Sequence record: PV654397.1
Direction: 5' to 3' (one strand)
Length of the DNA: 64,000 nt
Shown here piece by piece: positions 43,592 through 60,934 of the stretch (its first letter is position 1; every line of letters starts with the position of its first letter). The position numbers and the translations under genes were made by a program. The notes under the pieces were generated by a model. It worked only from the letters and a program-made list of their open reading frames with translations. It ran no database searches and had not been told where the DNA came from.

Positions 43592-43752
43592 GGTGAATCT
43601 CCTAACTTTGTGGGCCGTCGCACCGTTGCCGCCCTACGAGATACATTATTGCAGTACTGATATACTTTGTCAATACTTTTTTATTAATAGTTTTAGTTCC
43701 ACCAGCAGATAGTTACTCACCGTTATTAACTATATATTTTGGATACACCTAT

Positions 43753-43814
43753 GCACCCTGTGGGCTAGTTTTTGTCTATGCGTATATAATAGCAAAGGGA
43801 CTGACCGGAGTCAA
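43753..43814 (-). ncRNA. ORF-less promoter + CTAGCCCACAGGGTGC element (copy 1), candidate sRNA
   Basis: TTGACT-N17-TATTAT with the -35 inside a terminator hairpin; motif at 43753-43768. Confidence 0.45.
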
Positions 43815-43826
43815 TCCCTTTTTTTA
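43795..43826. terminator. Repeated terminator hairpin GGGACTGAC-CGGA-GTCAATCCC (also at about 46055, 49334 and a variant at 53352)
   Basis: 9-bp stem with T-runs; identical copies directly after minus-strand gene stops. Confidence 0.75.
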
Positions 43827-43837
43827 TTCTTTTTTTG

Positions 43838-45872: not shown

Positions 45873-46007
45873 GATTTTATTCCTTATTGCCAGGGAGAAC
45901 CGTTCCCCCTCTCGATATAAAACATTATACTTGATTCTAAGTACAATGCAAGTACTTTTTAAAAAATAGTTTTCAGTACTGAATACTTATATAATAGATA
46001 CACTTCC

Positions 46008-46074
46008 GCACCCTATGGGTCAGTGAGTTATCTCTCAATGGATATATAATAGCAAAGGGACTGACCGGAGTCAA
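46008..46074 (-). ncRNA. ORF-less promoter + CCCATAGGGTGC element (copy 2)
   Basis: Same architecture as copy 1. Confidence 0.45.
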
Positions 46075-46092
46075 TCCCTTTTTTAATCTTTT

Positions 46093-46677
46093 TTATCGTG
46101 TTACCTTACTTGCTGCCACATCACGCTTTTTATAGTACTGATTCCAGATATTGCTGGTTAAACCGTAATCAAGTACTTTAATAAGTCCATTACGATCCTG
46201 GCCGATATTCTGTTTTCTGATATCTCTTATCGTTAGTGTTGATAATGTATCATCAACGTGTTGTAGTGCATCAGCAAAGCGGTGCTGGCGTTCGATTGCA
46301 TTACGTTTAATATTGTACTTTAATTCATTGCACGCGTTTACGTGCTTCACACTGCCTTTGCTTGCAGTACTCAACCGATCCATAACGATAAACATATTAT
46401 CAGGATCGCATAAATGCATATGCACCTTTGCAAAGTACTGTTTCAACTGAGGGCGGTCATAGTCTAAAAAATTCCATACCTTACATTCAGTTTCATTTTG
46501 TTCTACACCCGCATCACAATTCGCGACCTTAATCACTAACCGATCATTTAAAGCGAATACTATACGGGAAGAACCAGCACCGATGATCTCCAGGCCAGCT
46601 AACCGACAAGCTGAAAGGATCTCTTTGTTGGTTTCCATTTCTGACAGTGTACGGATGAATTTAGTATAATTACGCAT
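46093..46677 (-). CDS. Ser/Thr protein kinase-like protein
   Basis: IGAGSSRIV glycine loop, VIKVA, QNETE helix C, FIVMDRL hinge, DIRKQNIG catalytic loop, VLDYG. Confidence 0.85.
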   Translation of the reverse strand: MRNYTKFIRTLSEMETNKEILSACRLAGLEIIGAGSSRIVFALNDRLVIKVANCDAGVEQNETECKVWNFLDYDRPQLKQYFAKVHMHLCDPDNMFIVMDRLSTASKGSVKHVNACNELKYNIKRNAIERQHRFADALQHVDDTLSTLTIRDIRKQNIGQDRNGLIKVLDYGLTSNIWNQYYKKRDVAASKVTR

Positions 46678-48769: not shown

Positions 48770-49045
48770 TTAAGTATTGTAAATGTCGTGAATAGTGATA
48801 AAGTTTTTACGACCGTAAACATGTAAATCAGTATCAATGTAGTGCTTATCAAGTACATCCTCGACGCTTAAAGACGTGTCGTGAATATCTTCATAAAATT
48901 GTGGATCAACAATCGTGCTTAAGTCATCTGGCGTTAACTTATCGTTAAGACATTGAACCGCCTGGATATCTGCTTCACGTTTCCATTGTTCCAGATTAGT
49001 AGTCAGTACTTGCTCGATTTCGTTAGCTGTAAGTAAAGTCCGCAT
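48770..49045 (-). CDS. Early-region hypothetical protein
   Basis: Promoter-driven acidic ORF. Confidence 0.7.
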   Translation of the reverse strand: MRTLLTANEIEQVLTTNLEQWKREADIQAVQCLNDKLTPDDLSTIVDPQFYEDIHDTSLSVEDVLDKHYIDTDLHVYGRKNFITIHDIYNT

Positions 49046-49114: not shown

Positions 49115-49187
49115 ATCAGGGGAGTTTTTCGTATGTCTTACTCCTGGACTACTTAACGGGGTTACTTATTTCGTTCCCCGTCCTGAT
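49115..49187 (-). ncRNA. Candidate 73-nt three-way-junction small RNA (copy 1)
   Basis: Own TTGCAT-N16-TATAAT promoter; AUCAGG/CCUGAU closing stem, ACGGGG/CCCCGU and GGAGU/ACUCC hairpins; no ORF; second copy at 60606-60680. Confidence 0.55.
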
Positions 49188-49290
49188 GTAAAACATTATA
49201 CTTGATTCTAAGTACAATGCAAGTACTTTTTTAAAAATAGTTTTCAGTACTTGATAGTACTAGCCACCAGCAAACAATAGATACATTTAT

Positions 49291-49352
49291 GCACCCTGTG
49301 GGCTGATTTGTTTCTATGCGTATATAATAGCAAAGGGACTGACCGGAGTCAA
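49291..49352 (-). ncRNA. ORF-less promoter + CCCACAGGGTGC element (copy 3)
   Basis: Same architecture as copy 1. Confidence 0.45.
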
Positions 49353-49516
49353 TCCCTTTTTCAAATATTTTTAAACTTCTTTCGGGTTGCGATATGTGAT
49401 AGCGTTCGGGTACATTTGTTTAATGTTATTCCATGCCTGGTTAACATTATAACCACTTGATCGAATCAGTTGGTTATTACCGACACCTTGAAACACTACT
49501 TCAAATAAGAATTCTT

Positions 49517-53168: not shown

Positions 53169-53302
53169 GATTCGTTTCCTTATTACCAGGGGAAACCGTT
53201 TCCCCTTTCGATGTAAAACATTATACGCTTATTGAGATAGTTTGCAAGTACTTTTTAAAAATAGTTTTCAGTACTCAAACATTATATAATAGATACACTT
53301 AT

Positions 53303-53369
53303 GCACCCTGTGGGCTAGTGAGCTATCTCTCAATGAATATATAATAGCAAAATGGCTGACCGGAGTCAA
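53303..53369 (-). ncRNA. ORF-less promoter + CTAGCCCACAGGGTGC element (copy 5)
   Basis: TTGACT-N17-TATTAT. Confidence 0.45.
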
Positions 53370-53608
53370 CCACTTTTTTCATTTATTTTTAGCTTTTAGA
53401 ATCGCCGCCTTTCGCGTCATGCCTTGCTTGATGTATTCCTGTACTTTCGCTTTACGTGCATTCGCTTTATTTGCTTTCGTAAACGCCGAACAACTTTTAT
53501 AGTTTAAACCTGTTGGATTCATTTAAATCACCATAAAGAATAGATAGGTTACTAACAACGCCGCGATCAATGCACCGACCAGGGCCGAACTATAGTAAGC
53601 TAATGTTT

Positions 53609-56653: not shown

Positions 56654-57136
56654 TTATGCTTCAACTTTGCGATGAGCTTCGATCCATTCCTCGCGAGTCA
56701 TACCACTGGAGTTAATCGCGTCCAGTACTACCGCAATGCAGTTACCACGCACCGGAATCAGATATTCTTCCCCGTTGTCCAGTACTACCGCTACGCGTTC
56801 CTGAATCCATTTTTTGGCTTTTACTTCTGGCTTGTCTTCCCCATACTTAACCGCCAGGGCTTTTTGTGCCATCTCTGTAACTACTTCCAGATCCAATCCA
56901 ACTACTGCCGCCTGGATACTTTCAATTGTTGCTTGTAGTTCTGCTTCACGGGCCGCCTTTGCCGCTTCAATTTCTGCCGCTTTATTTGCTTGTAGTTCTT
57001 TCGCAGTACTGTACGCGATGTTAAAATTATTGCGTACCGCTTTCATGGTATCGTTATCCAGTTCAGCCAGGATCTCAGCCGCGACGTTAGTTTCATTTGC
57101 TACCAGTGCTTTGATGAATGATTTTACATTAGCCAT
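56654..57136 (-). CDS. Divergent H-NS/StpA-like protein
   Basis: Ala/Glu coiled coil, then VLDNGEEYLIPVRGNCIAVVLDAINSSGMTREEWI aligning by eye with H-NS [35 protein letters not shown]. Confidence 0.6.
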   Translation of the reverse strand: MANVKSFIKALVANETNVAAEILAELDNDTMKAVRNNFNIAYSTAKELQANKAAEIEAAKAAREAELQATIESIQAAVVGLDLEVVTEMAQKALAVKYGEDKPEVKAKKWIQERVAVVLDNGEEYLIPVRGNCIAVVLDAINSSGMTREEWIEAHRKVEA

Positions 57137-57341
57137 TTTATAAATCCTCAATTAAAGTTTAGTTTACGTTTATTAGTGTATCAAAGTTTTCTCGACGTGT
57201 CCAGTTTTTCGTTCGACTTACTGGCGGTCTACTTAGTGCTCCCCGTCTTGATGTAATACATTCTACGCTTTTCTGTGGTAATGTCAACTACTTTCTTAAA
57301 ACTATTTTCAAAGTATCTCAGTACTACGATACTACAAAAAC

Positions 57342-57363
57342 AAAAAAGCCCACCAGGTGGGCT
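57342..57363 (-). terminator. Rho-independent terminator
   Basis: AGCCCACCAGGTGGGCT palindrome plus T6. Confidence 0.7.
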
Positions 57364-57369
57364 ATGTAC

Positions 57370-57600
57370 TTAATCAGTGAGTAAAATATTAAACACTTTA
57401 CCATTTAACGTTATTGGTGCACTGCTACCAGGCTCAAGATCCGTTAATATACCTGCAATCGCTTTATCATTGGCGACCTTTCCAGTGTCCAACAGTACTA
57501 CAGTACTGATAAGATTAACGCTCGTTTCAATATCATAATGCACGGCGTTAAGTAGTTGTGTAGTACTGCTTTCGTTAAGTAAAACAATTCGCTTAGTCAT
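57370..57600 (-). CDS. Early-region hypothetical protein
   Basis: ORF. Confidence 0.65.
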   Translation of the reverse strand: MTKRIVLLNESSTTQLLNAVHYDIETSVNLISTVVLLDTGKVANDKAIAGILTDLEPGSSAPITLNGKVFNILLTD

Positions 57601-57621
57601 GATGTTACCCCGTAGTATCTA

Positions 57622-57921
57622 TCAACGGCAATTAATAACGCCGGTATGCGTTACTTTCTCAGTATCCATTACAGTGACCGAACCGCGTTTAGTACTGGCA
57701 TCATAATAAATTGTTGTGCTACCGTTTTCGTCTTCTTCATGGAACGGGCCGTTTTTAAATGCTTCCGGCTGGATCTCTAAATCCTTTAATACAATCTCGC
57801 CAGTTCTTTCATCGGTCATTGCAACAGTGCACTGAATGAATTTTTCACTACTTACATCTAATGACGCATTAACAGCGAAAGAGGAAACAGATAAAGCCAG
57901 GGCGATGATTGCAATTTTCAT
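57622..57921 (-). CDS. Exported/periplasmic protein
   Basis: Sec signal peptide MKIAIIALALSVSSFAVNA; two Cys. Confidence 0.75.
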   Translation of the reverse strand: MKIAIIALALSVSSFAVNASLDVSSEKFIQCTVAMTDERTGEIVLKDLEIQPEAFKNGPFHEEDENGSTTIYYDASTKRGSVTVMDTEKVTHTGVINCR

Positions 57922-58005
57922 TTGATTATCCTTAGTTACCAGGGGGAACCGCTCCCCCTTGCGATGTAAAATATTATACAGTACTAAAAACTATTATCAA
58001 GTACT

Positions 58006-58242
58006 TTATGATTTTTTATAAAACATTTCAGCCGTGATATTTTTACCCGTTGGTTGTACTTTATCCAGAATTTTTTGATGCCCAGGCCGTCCAAATGAAT
58101 ATGATCCGTAAACCGTAAACCAGTAGTTACCCTCAGTGTTTACATGTACAGCACAATAGGGTACACCCCGCGATTCATCACTAGTAAAGTGTACTACCGT
58201 TCCCGTTACATTCGCAGACGTTGATTTGATTTGTTCAAGCAT
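58006..58242 (-). CDS. Early-region hypothetical protein
   Basis: Cassette-driven ORF. Confidence 0.7.
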   Translation of the reverse strand: MLEQIKSTSANVTGTVVHFTSDESRGVPYCAVHVNTEGNYWFTVYGSYSFGRPGHQKILDKVQPTGKNITAEMFYKKS

Positions 58243-58351
58243 TTTCTTATTCCTTAGTTACCAGGGGAACCGCTCCCCCTATGCAAAACATTATACGCGT
58301 TTAAAAACTAATTGCAAGTATTTTAATAAAAAGTATTTGAAAAAATAGTTG

Positions 58352-58481
58352 TTGACAAGTGCATCCAGTACTGGCATAATTACTACATCAAGACGAAACA
58401 GTCACTAACCCACCGGGTGCCGAGATCCGTCTATTAAATGATTCAGTACTGAAAAAGTAACGGGGAGTTATTATCTCCCCG
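58352..58481 (+). ncRNA. Plus-strand promoter + CTAACCCACCGGGTGC element (copy 6), about 100-nt candidate sRNA
   Basis: TTGACA(58352)-N17-CATAAT; motif 58405-58420; hairpin CGGGGAG/CTCCCCG at 58461-58481; no ORF. Confidence 0.5.
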
Positions 58482-58486
58482 CGTTG

Positions 58487-58708
58487 TTATTTTGTAAGGT
58501 ATAAACAGAAGTCACCTTTATTTGCTACGCCGCCAGTGTAACGCGAGGAATAGTTAGAAACGTCCTGGACTTCTGCTATTACCAGGGTATCATCATTCAA
58601 TTCGTCGCAGAAGCAAACGGCTGGATCTTGTACGCCGATTTTGTCAGCATGTTCCCGCATAGATTTAACCAGTGCTTCCAGTTGGGAAAGAGTAGTGATA
58701 TTAGCCAT
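58487..58708 (-). CDS. Early-region hypothetical protein
   Basis: Start trimmed to MANIT. Confidence 0.7.
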   Translation of the reverse strand: MANITTLSQLEALVKSMREHADKIGVQDPAVCFCDELNDDTLVIAEVQDVSNYSSRYTGGVANKGDFCLYLTK

Positions 58709-58792
58709 TGTATTTTCCTCATTACCAGGGAGAACCATTTCTCCCTTTGATGTAAACCATTATACAGTACTGAAAACTAATTGCAAGTACTT

Positions 58793-58981
58793 TTAATTAA
58801 ATTCCATAAAATCATTTTCAACGTGCACAACAATCTGATTATTTTTAAAGGACGCAGAAAACTCTATACAATCATAAACCGCTTTTTCTGTTACCAGACT
58901 ATGAGCACCAATCGGATTAATTGGGGATTGAATTGTTTCAATCTCGTTACCTTGTTCATTAACGATTAAAATATTAAACAT
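58793..58981 (-). CDS. Early-region hypothetical protein
   Basis: Promoter-driven ORF. Confidence 0.6.
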   Translation of the reverse strand: MFNILIVNEQGNEIETIQSPINPIGAHSLVTEKAVYDCIEFSASFKNNQIVVHVENDFMEFN

Positions 58982-59020
58982 TGCCGTTACTCCTGGATAG
59001 TGTTAACTCGATATAAAGTA

Positions 59021-59203
59021 TTATACGCCTTTATTGCTTAGTGTCCAGTGATCACGCATCATACGCCCCGCACGATCCCAGCTAGTAGGCATGGGTATGC
59101 CTTGCAATTCGTTAGGGGAGATCTCGACCTCGATCCCTACATCAATAACAGTCATTCCAGCTTTCGCAGCTTGCTCGCGGATAACCTCAGATAATGTTGT
59201 CAT
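59021..59203 (-). CDS. Early-region hypothetical protein
   Basis: Promoter-driven ORF; upstream module duplicated at 58990-59020 and 59212-59250. Confidence 0.6.
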   Translation of the reverse strand: MTTLSEVIREQAAKAGMTVIDVGIEVEISPNELQGIPMPTSWDRAGRMMRDHWTLSNKGV

Positions 59204-59277
59204 GATTAAAGCTCCTGGATAGTGTTAACTCGATATAAAGTATTATACAGTACTGAAAACTAATTGCAAGTACTTTT

Positions 59278-59538
59278 TCAATATTGTTTGTCGTCGTCTT
59301 CCTCGATGAATTGACCGACGAAATGATCTACTTTCGCTTTGAGGCTTTTATAATCTTCTTCTACTTCCTTTAAACGTTCCTGGTAGTATTCCAGTGCTTG
59401 AATATACGCCGCCTCAGCAGTTTTTGCACGCATAGCTAAATTCATTCCACGCGTTTCATCAAATAGCCAATAACCATCGGTGCAATGACTGATAGATAAT
59501 GATTTACTTAGTGCTGTATAGCTAATTACTTTACTCAT
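59278..59538 (-). CDS. Early-region hypothetical protein
   Basis: Cassette-driven ORF with C-terminal coiled coil. Confidence 0.7.
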   Translation of the reverse strand: MSKVISYTALSKSLSISHCTDGYWLFDETRGMNLAMRAKTAEAAYIQALEYYQERLKEVEEDYKSLKAKVDHFVGQFIEEDDDKQY

Positions 59539-59595
59539 TAGATAACCCTCAGTAAAGGCGGGAACTATTACCCGCCATTATCTCAGTACTGAATA

Positions 59596-59835
59596 TTACA
59601 TTCCAACCATTGCAGCACGGATCGCAGTAGTGCTATACTTAAAGCCGTCCGGCGTTGTAGTAGTACCGTTGGCTTTTAATCTGCGGTACATACATTCCGC
59701 AGCAATATCTTTAGTTCTACTTTGTGCGATGCAACTTTGAGCAAGCCGATACAATGACTCACCGTTATTAATCCAAAGGCTTACATTCCAATGAGTTTTG
59801 TTTTTGTGACCGTTGTAAGTTTTAGTACTAGCCAT
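59596..59835 (-). CDS. Early-region protein, paralog of 61638-61877
   Basis: GHKNKTHWNVSLWINN...TPDGFKYSTTAIRAAMVGM. Confidence 0.8.
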   Translation of the reverse strand: MASTKTYNGHKNKTHWNVSLWINNGESLYRLAQSCIAQSRTKDIAAECMYRRLKANGTTTTPDGFKYSTTAIRAAMVGM

Positions 59836-59925
59836 TTTTAAATCCTCGTTTGAGCGGGGAACCACTCCCCGCCTCGATATAAAGTATTATACGCTTTTAA
59901 ACTTAGTTTGCAAGTACTTTTTAAA

Positions 59926-60537
59926 TTAATATTCGATTGATTCCACTACGCCATCAATAACATTGAATTGATACTCGTTACCCTCAATCAGTGCCGTAAT
60001 GTTTTCAGTAGTGAATTGATCCTCATATGCATTCTCTAAATCACGGTACAACTTGCGGGACAATTCACGAATAGTTTCAGTGAGTAGTTCCTCAAGCTCA
60101 TTAACTAACGTTTCTTGTTTTGCGGTTAAATCAGTGTAAGCCGATTCAATGTACCCGCTTACCGTGTTTTCGTGTGCGTAGCGAGAGTGTGAACGTTCTA
60201 CACTCATTGCCAAATCATCTTCATTCAACAAGTGACGGATAGAACGATATTTCGTTAACGCTTTAATCTTGCGTAAAAACTTCACTGCGTCCACGCTGTC
60301 AGTACTGATTGATGCACCGTCACCCTGGGACCAAAAACCGCTGAATTGTATTTCAGCTTCATTAATGCCATATTCCGGTAGTACTGTTTCTTTATAGTAT
60401 TCAATTTCACTTTCAGAAAAATAATTGTCGTTTGAGTTTTTTTCACGTTCCCGAACCAGTTCGATAGCTGACGTTTGTTGTTCTGCGTTCAATTCAGAAA
60501 AAGCCATAACATAAGTAGTAGTAGTGATAGTTTTCAT
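59926..60537 (-). CDS. Acidic phage hypothetical protein
   Basis: 203 aa, FSGFWSQGDGAS motif. Confidence 0.8.
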   Translation of the reverse strand: MKTITTTTYVMAFSELNAEQQTSAIELVREREKNSNDNYFSESEIEYYKETVLPEYGINEAEIQFSGFWSQGDGASISTDSVDAVKFLRKIKALTKYRSIRHLLNEDDLAMSVERSHSRYAHENTVSGYIESAYTDLTAKQETLVNELEELLTETIRELSRKLYRDLENAYEDQFTTENITALIEGNEYQFNVIDGVVESIEY

Positions 60538-60605
60538 TTTGTAACCCTCATTCAGTAGTTGATGTAAGTATTATACGCTTTTAAAAACATTTGTCAAACT
60601 ATTTT

Positions 60606-60680
60606 ATCAGGGGAGTTTTTCGTGTGCCTTACTCCTGGGCTACTTAACGGGAAGTTACTTATTTCGTTCCCCGTCCTGAT
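60606..60680 (-). ncRNA. Candidate three-way-junction small RNA (copy 2, 75 nt)
   Basis: Near-identical to 49115-49187 with stems preserved; own promoter. Confidence 0.55.
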
Positions 60681-60761
60681 GTAAAACATTATACGCCTTT
60701 AAACATAGTTTGCAAGTACTTTTTAAAAATAGTTTTCAGTACTGAATATTAAAAAAAAGTA

Positions 60762-60934
60762 TTGACAGCATTATCAAGTACTGGCATAATATACCCCATG
60801 ACAACAGCTAACCCACCGGGTGCACAATTGTAACTATACTAAACTAATTTTGCTATAGATACACTCCCGCACCCTATGGGCTACGGCTTATCTGCCAATG
60901 AATACATTATGCCAGTACTGACAAAATAAGTCAA
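60762..60934. promoter_or_regulatory. Convergent promoter pair, each followed by the CCCANNGGGTGC element (copies 7 and 8)
   Basis: + TTGACA(60762)-N17-CATAAT, motif 60808-60823; - TTGACT(60934)-N17-CATAAT, motif 60869-60884. Confidence 0.65.

Follow-up and report, generated by a model that had tools for sequence, protein, structure and literature searches.

A described RNA of comparable size and position is the put RNA of phage HK022 (putL and putR), a factor-independent, cis-acting antiterminator and antipausing RNA. putL is about 70 nt long, contains two stem-loops, starts just after an early sigma-70 promoter of the phage and acts on the polymerase that made it (PMC9378689). In put, the contacts come from the stems, a triplex and a bulge, and the RNA binds the zinc-binding domain of the RNA polymerase beta-prime subunit, suppressing pausing and termination. 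Lambda-type nut sites and rrn antitermination leaders place a boxA and a boxB hairpin with a GNRA-like pentaloop after early or tandem promoters, while 5'-terminal stabilizing stem-loops of the E. coli ompA 5' UTR type put a helix at or within a few nucleotides of the transcript's 5' end, ahead of a leader and a ribosome-binding site, and need no conserved unpaired sequence. Phages also make decoys, such as pseudo-ToxI antitoxin mimics and solitary CRISPR-repeat RNA anti-CRISPRs. Finally, the interval between promoters A1 and A2 of the T7/T3 early leader has been available as sequence since the T7 genome was determined, but we found no annotation of it as an RNA element.

Here we analyzed a stretch of 64,000 nucleotides (the window) from record PV654397.1, the jumbo coliphage WPEC5 of the PBECO4/121Q group. 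An initial annotation, made from the sequence alone, had described at 49115-49187 and 60606-60680 (minus strand) a duplicated 73-75-nt RNA candidate, predicted to fold as a three-way junction with ACGAAA in two loops, and had inferred a tRNA-sized sRNA acting as a protein sponge or as a decoy substrate for a defence nuclease. We found that the duplicated element is real and that it belongs to an unannotated family of structured leader RNAs, located between two tandem host-polymerase early promoters in this phage, in T7 (between A1 and A2) and in hundreds of other enterobacterial phages. Its function is not known.

The element compares with the described systems as follows. With the T7 A1-A2 leader it shares the same core (a hairpin, a UAAGUAGAC joiner and a hairpin with loop AUAAGUC..CGAAAAA), made by host polymerase from the first strong early promoter and lying directly before the next promoter; the window's copies and the T7-type sequences align column by column. 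In T7-like phages, however, the core starts about 39 nt into the A1 transcript, behind another hairpin, and has no closing helix, whereas here the element starts at the predicted +1 and is closed into a three-way junction, and copies 1 and 2 have a much larger hairpin 2 with an extra UAAGUA and ACGAAA. With put it shares a length of about 70 nt, two stem-loops and a position directly downstream of an early host-polymerase promoter. Our model of the core (R1, see below) found no sequence or structure match in the HK022 genome, a one-directional comparison since no put model was built, and the conserved parts here are unpaired purine-rich strands; binding to polymerase and effects on pausing or termination were not assayed, so that the likeness to put is by analogy only. 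As in the nut and rrn leaders, the element follows early or tandem promoters and has a hairpin with an A-rich loop, but this loop is 14-17 nt long, no boxA-like match occurs in the terminal repeat, and boxA matches in the window are at chance level. The T7 group, by contrast, carries a separate sequence matching the rrn-type boxA (GCTCTTTAACAA) downstream of A3, at about 790-805 of the phiA1122 sequence examined. As in the ompA type, the predicted fold of copies 1 and 2 pairs from +1, although mRNA half-life was not measured; unlike that type, the element keeps a 9-nt joiner and a 14-17-nt loop nearly invariant across unrelated phages and is followed by a second promoter. As for the decoys, small, structured, non-coding phage RNAs that are made early and could bind a host defence protein, the element has no tandem 34-36-nt repeats, no terminator and no known partner, and inspection, without a formal comparison, revealed no resemblance to the type I-E or I-F repeat hairpins.

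Three copies of the element in the terminal repeat

The 500 bases around the element are 100% identical to WPEC5, a 381-kb genome, and 92-98% identical to PBECO4, 121Q, G17 and other Asteriusvirus genomes. Pattern hits in the WPEC5 record occur at two places 359,664 bp apart, which puts the window at the right-hand 64 kb of the genome; about the last 22 kb (window ~42.3-64 kb) is then the direct terminal repeat. This repeat is packed with early promoters. A regular expression found 34 promoter-like sites on the minus strand between 43.2 and 63.6 kb, against 5 on the plus strand of the whole window. Most have the form TTGCAA or TTGACA, a 16-nt spacer, TATAAT, then GTTTTAC and ATC(G/A)AG, and about 24 of them are followed within a few nucleotides by a short GC hairpin (for example GGGGAGAAAUGAUUCUCCCC), a ribosome-binding site and a small ORF. 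The start of these transcripts resembles the start of the T7 A1 transcript (AUCGAGAGGG).

The observation reported in the initial annotation was confirmed: both minus-strand sequences read exactly as described there, and a 27-nt and a 32-nt probe each matched only these two places, with 0 matches expected by chance. The three-way junction is the minimum-free-energy and centroid fold of both copies, at -20.2 kcal/mol (z = -3.2) for copy 1 and -18.6 kcal/mol (z = -1.6) for copy 2, while the opposite strand folds worse and less uniquely. The two copies differ by 3 substitutions and a 2-nt insertion that lengthens helix 2. The spacers of the flanking promoters are largely different, so the element is much better conserved than the promoter spacers beside it, which we read as selection on the element rather than on the region. 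The start at +1 is plausible, because the upstream promoter (P1) has the same -10-to-start spacing and the same AUC start as T7 A1.

Copy 1 (73 nt; 49115-49187, minus strand, as are all features of the three loci) comprises a closing helix AUCAGG/CCUGAU (49187-49182 with 49120-49115), a hairpin 2 ACGGGG/CCCCGU (49181-49176 with 49161-49156, 14-nt loop), the joiner UAAGUAGUCCA (49155-49145) and a hairpin 3 GGAGU/ACUCC (49144-49140 with 49125-49121, 14-nt loop). Its P1 (49195-49222) reads TTGCAT, a 16-nt spacer and TATAAT, followed by GTTTTAC, with +1 at the A at 49187, and has the same architecture as about 34 other minus-strand early promoters in the terminal repeat. A second promoter, P2 (49079-49106; TTGACA, 16-nt spacer, TATAAT, 12 of 12 matches), has its -35 starting 8 nt after the element, and is followed by an ORF of 91 aa (48770-49045; acidic, pI 4.4, phrog_14947), a homologue of which follows the element in phage muut. 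Copy 2 (75 nt; 60606-60680) forms the same predicted three-way junction, with helix 2 lengthened to 7 pairs. It lies between P1 (60688-60715; TTGCAA, 16-nt spacer, TATAAT) and P2 (60570-60597; 12 of 12 matches, again starting 8 nt after the element), upstream of an ORF of 203 aa (59926-60537; acidic, pI 4.5, phrog_5162).

A third, diverged copy, not noticed in the initial annotation, is found at 57180-57252. It shares a 33-nt ungapped core with the other two and is of the type ancestral to RaK2-like phages. It has no separate hairpin 2, since GACG near the 5' end pairs with CGUC after hairpin 3, and its hairpin 3 is CCAGU/ACUGG. Its P1 (57260-57287; TTGACA, 16-nt spacer, TAGAAT) lies just after an intrinsic terminator at 57363-57347. 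Only a weak P2-like site follows (57184-57156; TTGATA, 17-nt spacer, TAAACT), then an ORF of 160 aa (56654-57136; phrog_27871) and a terminator at 56632-56611. Genes related to this ORF follow the element in Salmonella phage Munch and Erwinia phage Hallingskeid. All three downstream ORFs are acidic (pI 4.4-4.9) and of unknown function, and analysis of the proteins gave no functional clue. In T7 the first gene after the same leader encodes the acidic anti-restriction protein Ocr; no homology to Ocr was found or tested.

No terminator-like site lies between the element and the ORF at any copy. As encoded, the element is the 5' leader of a longer transcript from the upstream promoter of a tandem pair, and a species of ~75-90 nt would need processing or a block at P2. 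Each copy does have its own promoter, but it lacks an intrinsic terminator or other defined 3' end (a processed 3' end was not examined), so that a discrete, tRNA-sized sRNA gene is not supported. ARAGORN likewise detected no tRNA or tmRNA gene in the window. The claim that no ORF is present is right in substance: a 31-codon ATG frame overlaps copy 2, but it starts upstream of +1, and the 2-nt indel puts the two copies in different frames. A leader peptide was rejected for the same difference in frame and because there is no start codon after +1. Presence of a small transcript had been named as a test of the initial proposal, but the one raw-read RNA run examined gave 0 reads on 56800-60900; metatranscriptome contigs show presence rather than transcription. 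There are no expression or probing data for this phage.

A core shared with T7-like phages

The conserved core is an unpaired UAAGUAGNC joiner followed by a hairpin with a covarying 4-6-bp stem and a purine-rich loop of 14-17 nt (UAAGNC...CGAAAAA). In the myovirus versions the very 5' end is locked into a closing helix, with or without an extra hairpin, which gives the three-way junction. R1, the model built from the joint alignment of the window's copies and the T7-type sequences, scored the three copies at 49.7 bits (copy 1, 49155-49120, E 1.5e-16), 48.3 bits (copy 2, 60646-60611) and 54.6 bits (copy 3, 57235-57200, E 2e-18). Nothing else in the window exceeded 12 bits.

BLAST with 101 nt around copy 1 found the three-way-junction form in all Asteriusvirus genomes and, at 88-94% identity, in some phi92-like phages (EmilieFrey, muut, outra) and some rV5-like phages (A73, W70, A7_1, A5-4). 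In each case P2 follows, but the genes after it differ. Between Asteriusvirus and phi92-like phages, the shared block starts near +1 of P1 and runs through the -35 of P2 (at 2440-2680 of the EmilieFrey and muut sequences examined), continuing in muut through the ORF; the P1 promoter itself is unrelated, suggesting that the element-P2 cassette moves horizontally. In Escherichia phage CMSTMSU, a record flagged UNVERIFIED, the copy (about 250-330 of the sequence examined) lacks part of the 5' strand of hairpin 3 (GTCGAGTAAG instead of GTCCAGGAGTAAG), which may be a real defective copy or a sequencing error.

BLAST with copy 3 and with its Salmonella-phage relative reached RaK2, K64-1, Munch, 7t3, Hallingskeid and the rV5-like UPEC06 and LTH01 and, unexpectedly, also T7, T3, phiA1122, phiYeO3-12 and many Klebsiella, Yersinia, Serratia and Citrobacter podoviruses. 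A 65-nt T7 query found 485 T7/T3-like phage records with one place each. In T7 this is nt 528-592, inside the leader of the A1 transcript and ending 1-2 nt before the -35 of A2. In every locus read, the element is transcribed from a strong promoter and followed by a second promoter-like site 0-110 nt downstream (a weak one at copy 3); the layout of copies 1 and 2 is seen in T7-likes, Munch, Hallingskeid, RaK2, K64-1, UPEC06 and EmilieFrey. Several deposited annotations (in the records of WPEC3, SD-series Salmonella phages, UPEC06, Hallingskeid, A7_1 and JP4) call short hypothetical proteins across the element, which, given the non-coding pattern of conservation, are probably spurious.

Other searches delimited this distribution. 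An exact-pattern scan of IMG/VR for the copy-1/copy-3 core found nothing, whereas a looser pattern matched forty contigs, most of them T7-like (one is a Munch-like jumbo contig) and a handful being chance matches in coding regions. R1 found no match in HK022, T5, T4 or the type genomes of rV5 and phi92, and there was no match in complete E. coli genomes. A loose-pattern scan of bacterial genomes returned at least 120 stretches; those examined were chance matches, apart from one T3-like phage contig binned in a MAG. Comparison with Rfam 15, one of the checks suggested at the outset, gave no hit at or above a gathering threshold in the window, only chance-level hits below threshold near copy 1, and none in the T7 leader. 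No annotation of the element was found in any of the records read. Literature searches found no paper describing the element, and the exact T7 sequence appeared only as template or guide sequence in three papers, although older work on T7 pausing was not covered and prior mention of hairpins in the A1 leader is not excluded. As a family spanning podoviruses and jumbo myoviruses the element appears to be new, whereas its general kind, a structured early-leader RNA of a phage, is known.

Covariation among related phages, which had likewise been proposed as a test, strongly supported hairpin 3. Over 26 distinct sequences from five phage lineages, 92.3% of cells pair against 76.1% in shuffles (0 of 500 shuffles reach the observed value), four of six pairs show double compensatory changes (GGAG/CUCC, CCAG/CUGG, CCUG/CAGG, CUUG/CAAG), and structures slid by 1-3 columns pair at only 31-42%. 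The stem variants are GCCUG/CAGGU, GCCUG/CAGGC, GCUUG/CAAGC, ACCUG/CAGGU, GCCUG/CGGGC, GCCAG/CUGGU, ACUUG/CAAGU, UCCUG/CAGGA, CCAG/CUGG and GGAG/CUCC, and the G-U pairs fit the sense strand only. The invariant positions are mostly unpaired, namely AGUAG in the joiner and UAA, C and GAA in the loop. In T7-likes, the small hairpin before the joiner also keeps pairing while its stem changes (CCGG/CCGG, CCAG/CUGG, CCAC/GUGG, GCUG/CGGC, CGGG/CCCG), and the whole A1 leader folds as three successive hairpins with z = -3.4.

Of the three helices of the junction, only this hairpin 3 has strong covariation support. MAFFT with RNAalifold across element types recovered hairpin 3 alone; the closing helix and hairpin 2 do not align by sequence, and we consequently relied on per-sequence folds and a crude helix test. 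Diverged members folded independently each gave a closing helix, an unpaired joiner and hairpin 3, the closing helices of the myovirus forms having quite different sequences (AUCAGG/CCUGAU, GACGG/CCGUC, CGGC/GCCG, GCGGC/GUCGC and GCGACG/CGUUGC). The shuffle test was marginal in its loose version (combined p of about 0.05) and gave about 0.006 across 8 lineages when restricted to the observed positions, a restriction chosen after seeing the data, so that support for the closing helix is modest. The thermodynamic z-scores of several family members are unremarkable, from -0.1 to -0.9. As to the ACGAAA motif, it is present in both loops of copies 1 and 2, but in relatives the first-loop copy reads ACGAAG or ACCAAA, and hence the two identical sites are not conserved; the motif that repeats and is conserved is UAAG(U).

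Possible roles of the element

The interpretation offered in the initial annotation is thus supported only in part: the element is a non-coding, structured, RNA-level feature that starts at a promoter's predicted +1 and carries conserved single-stranded purine-rich segments resembling recognition sites, but a discrete sRNA gene and conservation of the two ACGAAA sites were not supported, and the sponge or decoy role was neither tested nor excluded. What the analysis supports well is the identity of the element, a conserved structured RNA made by host sigma-70 RNA polymerase as the first 73-75 nt of the P1 transcript, with no terminator before P2 and the small ORF; how it works is inference, as function was not measured. 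We put the probability of a real conserved RNA element at about 0.85, and that of the cis-acting mechanism described next at only 0.35-0.4.

In the version that we tentatively prefer, the element would act as RNA on the sense strand, probably folding while being transcribed and presenting its UAAG-containing purine-rich single strands to a conserved host component of the transcription or RNA-decay machinery. The nearly invariant unpaired strands call for a sequence-specific partner and, because the phage groups share few proteins, this partner is most simply a host component, although none has been identified. As a cis-acting leader module, the element would change the fate of the polymerase or transcript that started at P1, giving pause or termination resistance in the manner of put, plus protection of the paired 5' end, and the phage would then have a robust class of very early transcripts beside the ordinary P2 transcripts. 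Against this view, T7 host-polymerase transcripts that include the element stop largely at the early terminator TE, which argues against strong processive antitermination there. Moreover, P2 produces mRNA without the element, so that the downstream gene does not obviously need it in cis, a fact that suits a trans-acting product about as well.

Such a trans-acting product, an adjusted form of the initial proposal, is the main rival, still live although we consider it less likely. P1 would exist mainly to make the RNA itself, and the leader would be released by processing in the AU-rich stretch after the closing helix, by RNase III further downstream as in T7, or by a polymerase parked at P2. 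It would then titrate or decoy a conserved host protein, such as an RNA-binding regulator, a ribonuclease or a defence nuclease or sensor, through its two or three UAAG-containing single strands. In favor of this reading, P1 plus the element is a self-contained add-on upstream of a complete promoter-leader-ORF cassette, which precedes unrelated genes in different phages; phage groups with few common proteins share it, pointing to a host factor; the unpaired nucleotides are the most conserved positions; and the RNA is among the first made, from the terminal repeat or from the first 600 nt of T7. On the other hand, no defined 3' end exists, no small RNA species has been shown, no partner is known, and the ACG triplet in the loop varies to AUG, GUG and AAG, so that it is not a strict anticodon mimic. 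For this last reason, mimicry of the tRNA-Arg anticodon loop (U-ACG-AA) was rejected.

Unlikely, in our view, is a plain structural leader, a sturdier version of the 5' hairpin carried by most early transcripts of this phage, which would protect the 5' end from RNase E or RppH and keep the untranslated leader structured and poor in Rho-binding sequence, with no specific partner. The abundance of hairpin-bearing early leaders in the repeat, the resemblance of the first 16 nt of the element to that canonical leader, the pairing from +1 and the C-poor single strands agree with it. However, simple protection does not explain near-invariant unpaired sequence kept across podoviruses and myoviruses while the stems change, nor the constant placement before a second promoter, and in T7-likes the element lies behind another hairpin.

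A DNA-level element of P2, in which the A-tract and inverted repeats would serve as an UP element or as a protein or polymerase binding site that tunes the downstream promoter and the RNA fold would be incidental, is very doubtful. In T7-likes the hairpin ends 1-2 bp before the A2 -35, so CGAAAAAC lies where an UP element would, and one record annotates a -35 signal under the match. But stem positions change by compensatory pairs, including G-U pairs, which a protein-binding palindrome would not do, the distance to P2 varies from 1 to about 110 bp, and copy 3 keeps the core with only a weak P2-like site. A decayed leader plus ribosome-binding site, left after duplication of a promoter cassette and kept only by linkage, is very unlikely: although the 5' end is homologous to canonical leaders and AGGAG sits in the 5' strand of hairpin 3 in copies 1 and 2, the family is kept in hundreds of genomes with compensatory changes, AGGAG is replaced by GCCAG, GCCUG or ACUUG in other members, and the element is conserved far better than the neighboring spacers.

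Other identities were considered and dropped. In T7, CUGAUAAG...GAAA resembles by eye the hammerhead core CUGAUGA...GAAA, but the catalytic G is missing and the motif is absent from copies 1 and 2 and from phiA1122. CsrA and Hfq sites were rejected because there is no GGA in the loops and too few ARN repeats, and loop-loop kissing because both loops are purine-rich. Pairing of UAAGUA with the UACUUA of the P2 discriminator, not tested here, would span only 6 nt.

If the element is functional, a single short RNA motif is shared by phage lineages with almost no proteins in common, at the same place in the earliest host-polymerase transcription unit, including the classic A1-A2-A3 region of T7. 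The question is accessible in T7, for which genetics, in vitro transcription from A1 and genome-entry assays already exist, while the jumbo phage contributes natural variants (a three-way-junction form, a form without hairpin 2 and a copy without a strong P2). A functional element would add a family to the RNA databases, would improve annotation of early regions of therapeutic coliphages, and might reveal a new way for phages to handle the host transcription, RNA-decay or defence machinery at the very start of infection. A bolder possibility, not excluded but unlikely on present evidence, is a pan-phage "first RNA", made within seconds of DNA entry by T7-like podoviruses, RaK2-like jumbo phages and other coliphages. 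It would either reprogram the polymerase that transcribes it, as a factor-independent put-like antipausing or antitermination RNA that could also speed transcription-driven genome entry, or disarm a conserved host ribonuclease or immune sensor as a decoy; either case would be a new functional RNA class, unnoticed in the best-studied 100 nt of T7.

Other repeats in the window

A four-copy repeat family was observed at 43742-43834, 46002-46094, 49280-49372 and 53297-53389. Each copy has a 12-bp hairpin (AAAGGGATTGACTCCGGTCAGTCCCTTT) that reads as a terminator on the plus strand and a weaker one on the minus strand, beside a small conserved hairpin, GCACCCTGTGGGC, and one copy lies just upstream of P1 of element copy 1. 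Between 19000 and 42200, several families of direct repeats fall inside what look like arrays of paralogous genes, for example eight copies of TTGATAGTTTGTTCC... between 37.0 and 40.9 kb, and 145-nt and 300-nt repeats at 22.9-24.4 and 38.0-38.8 kb.
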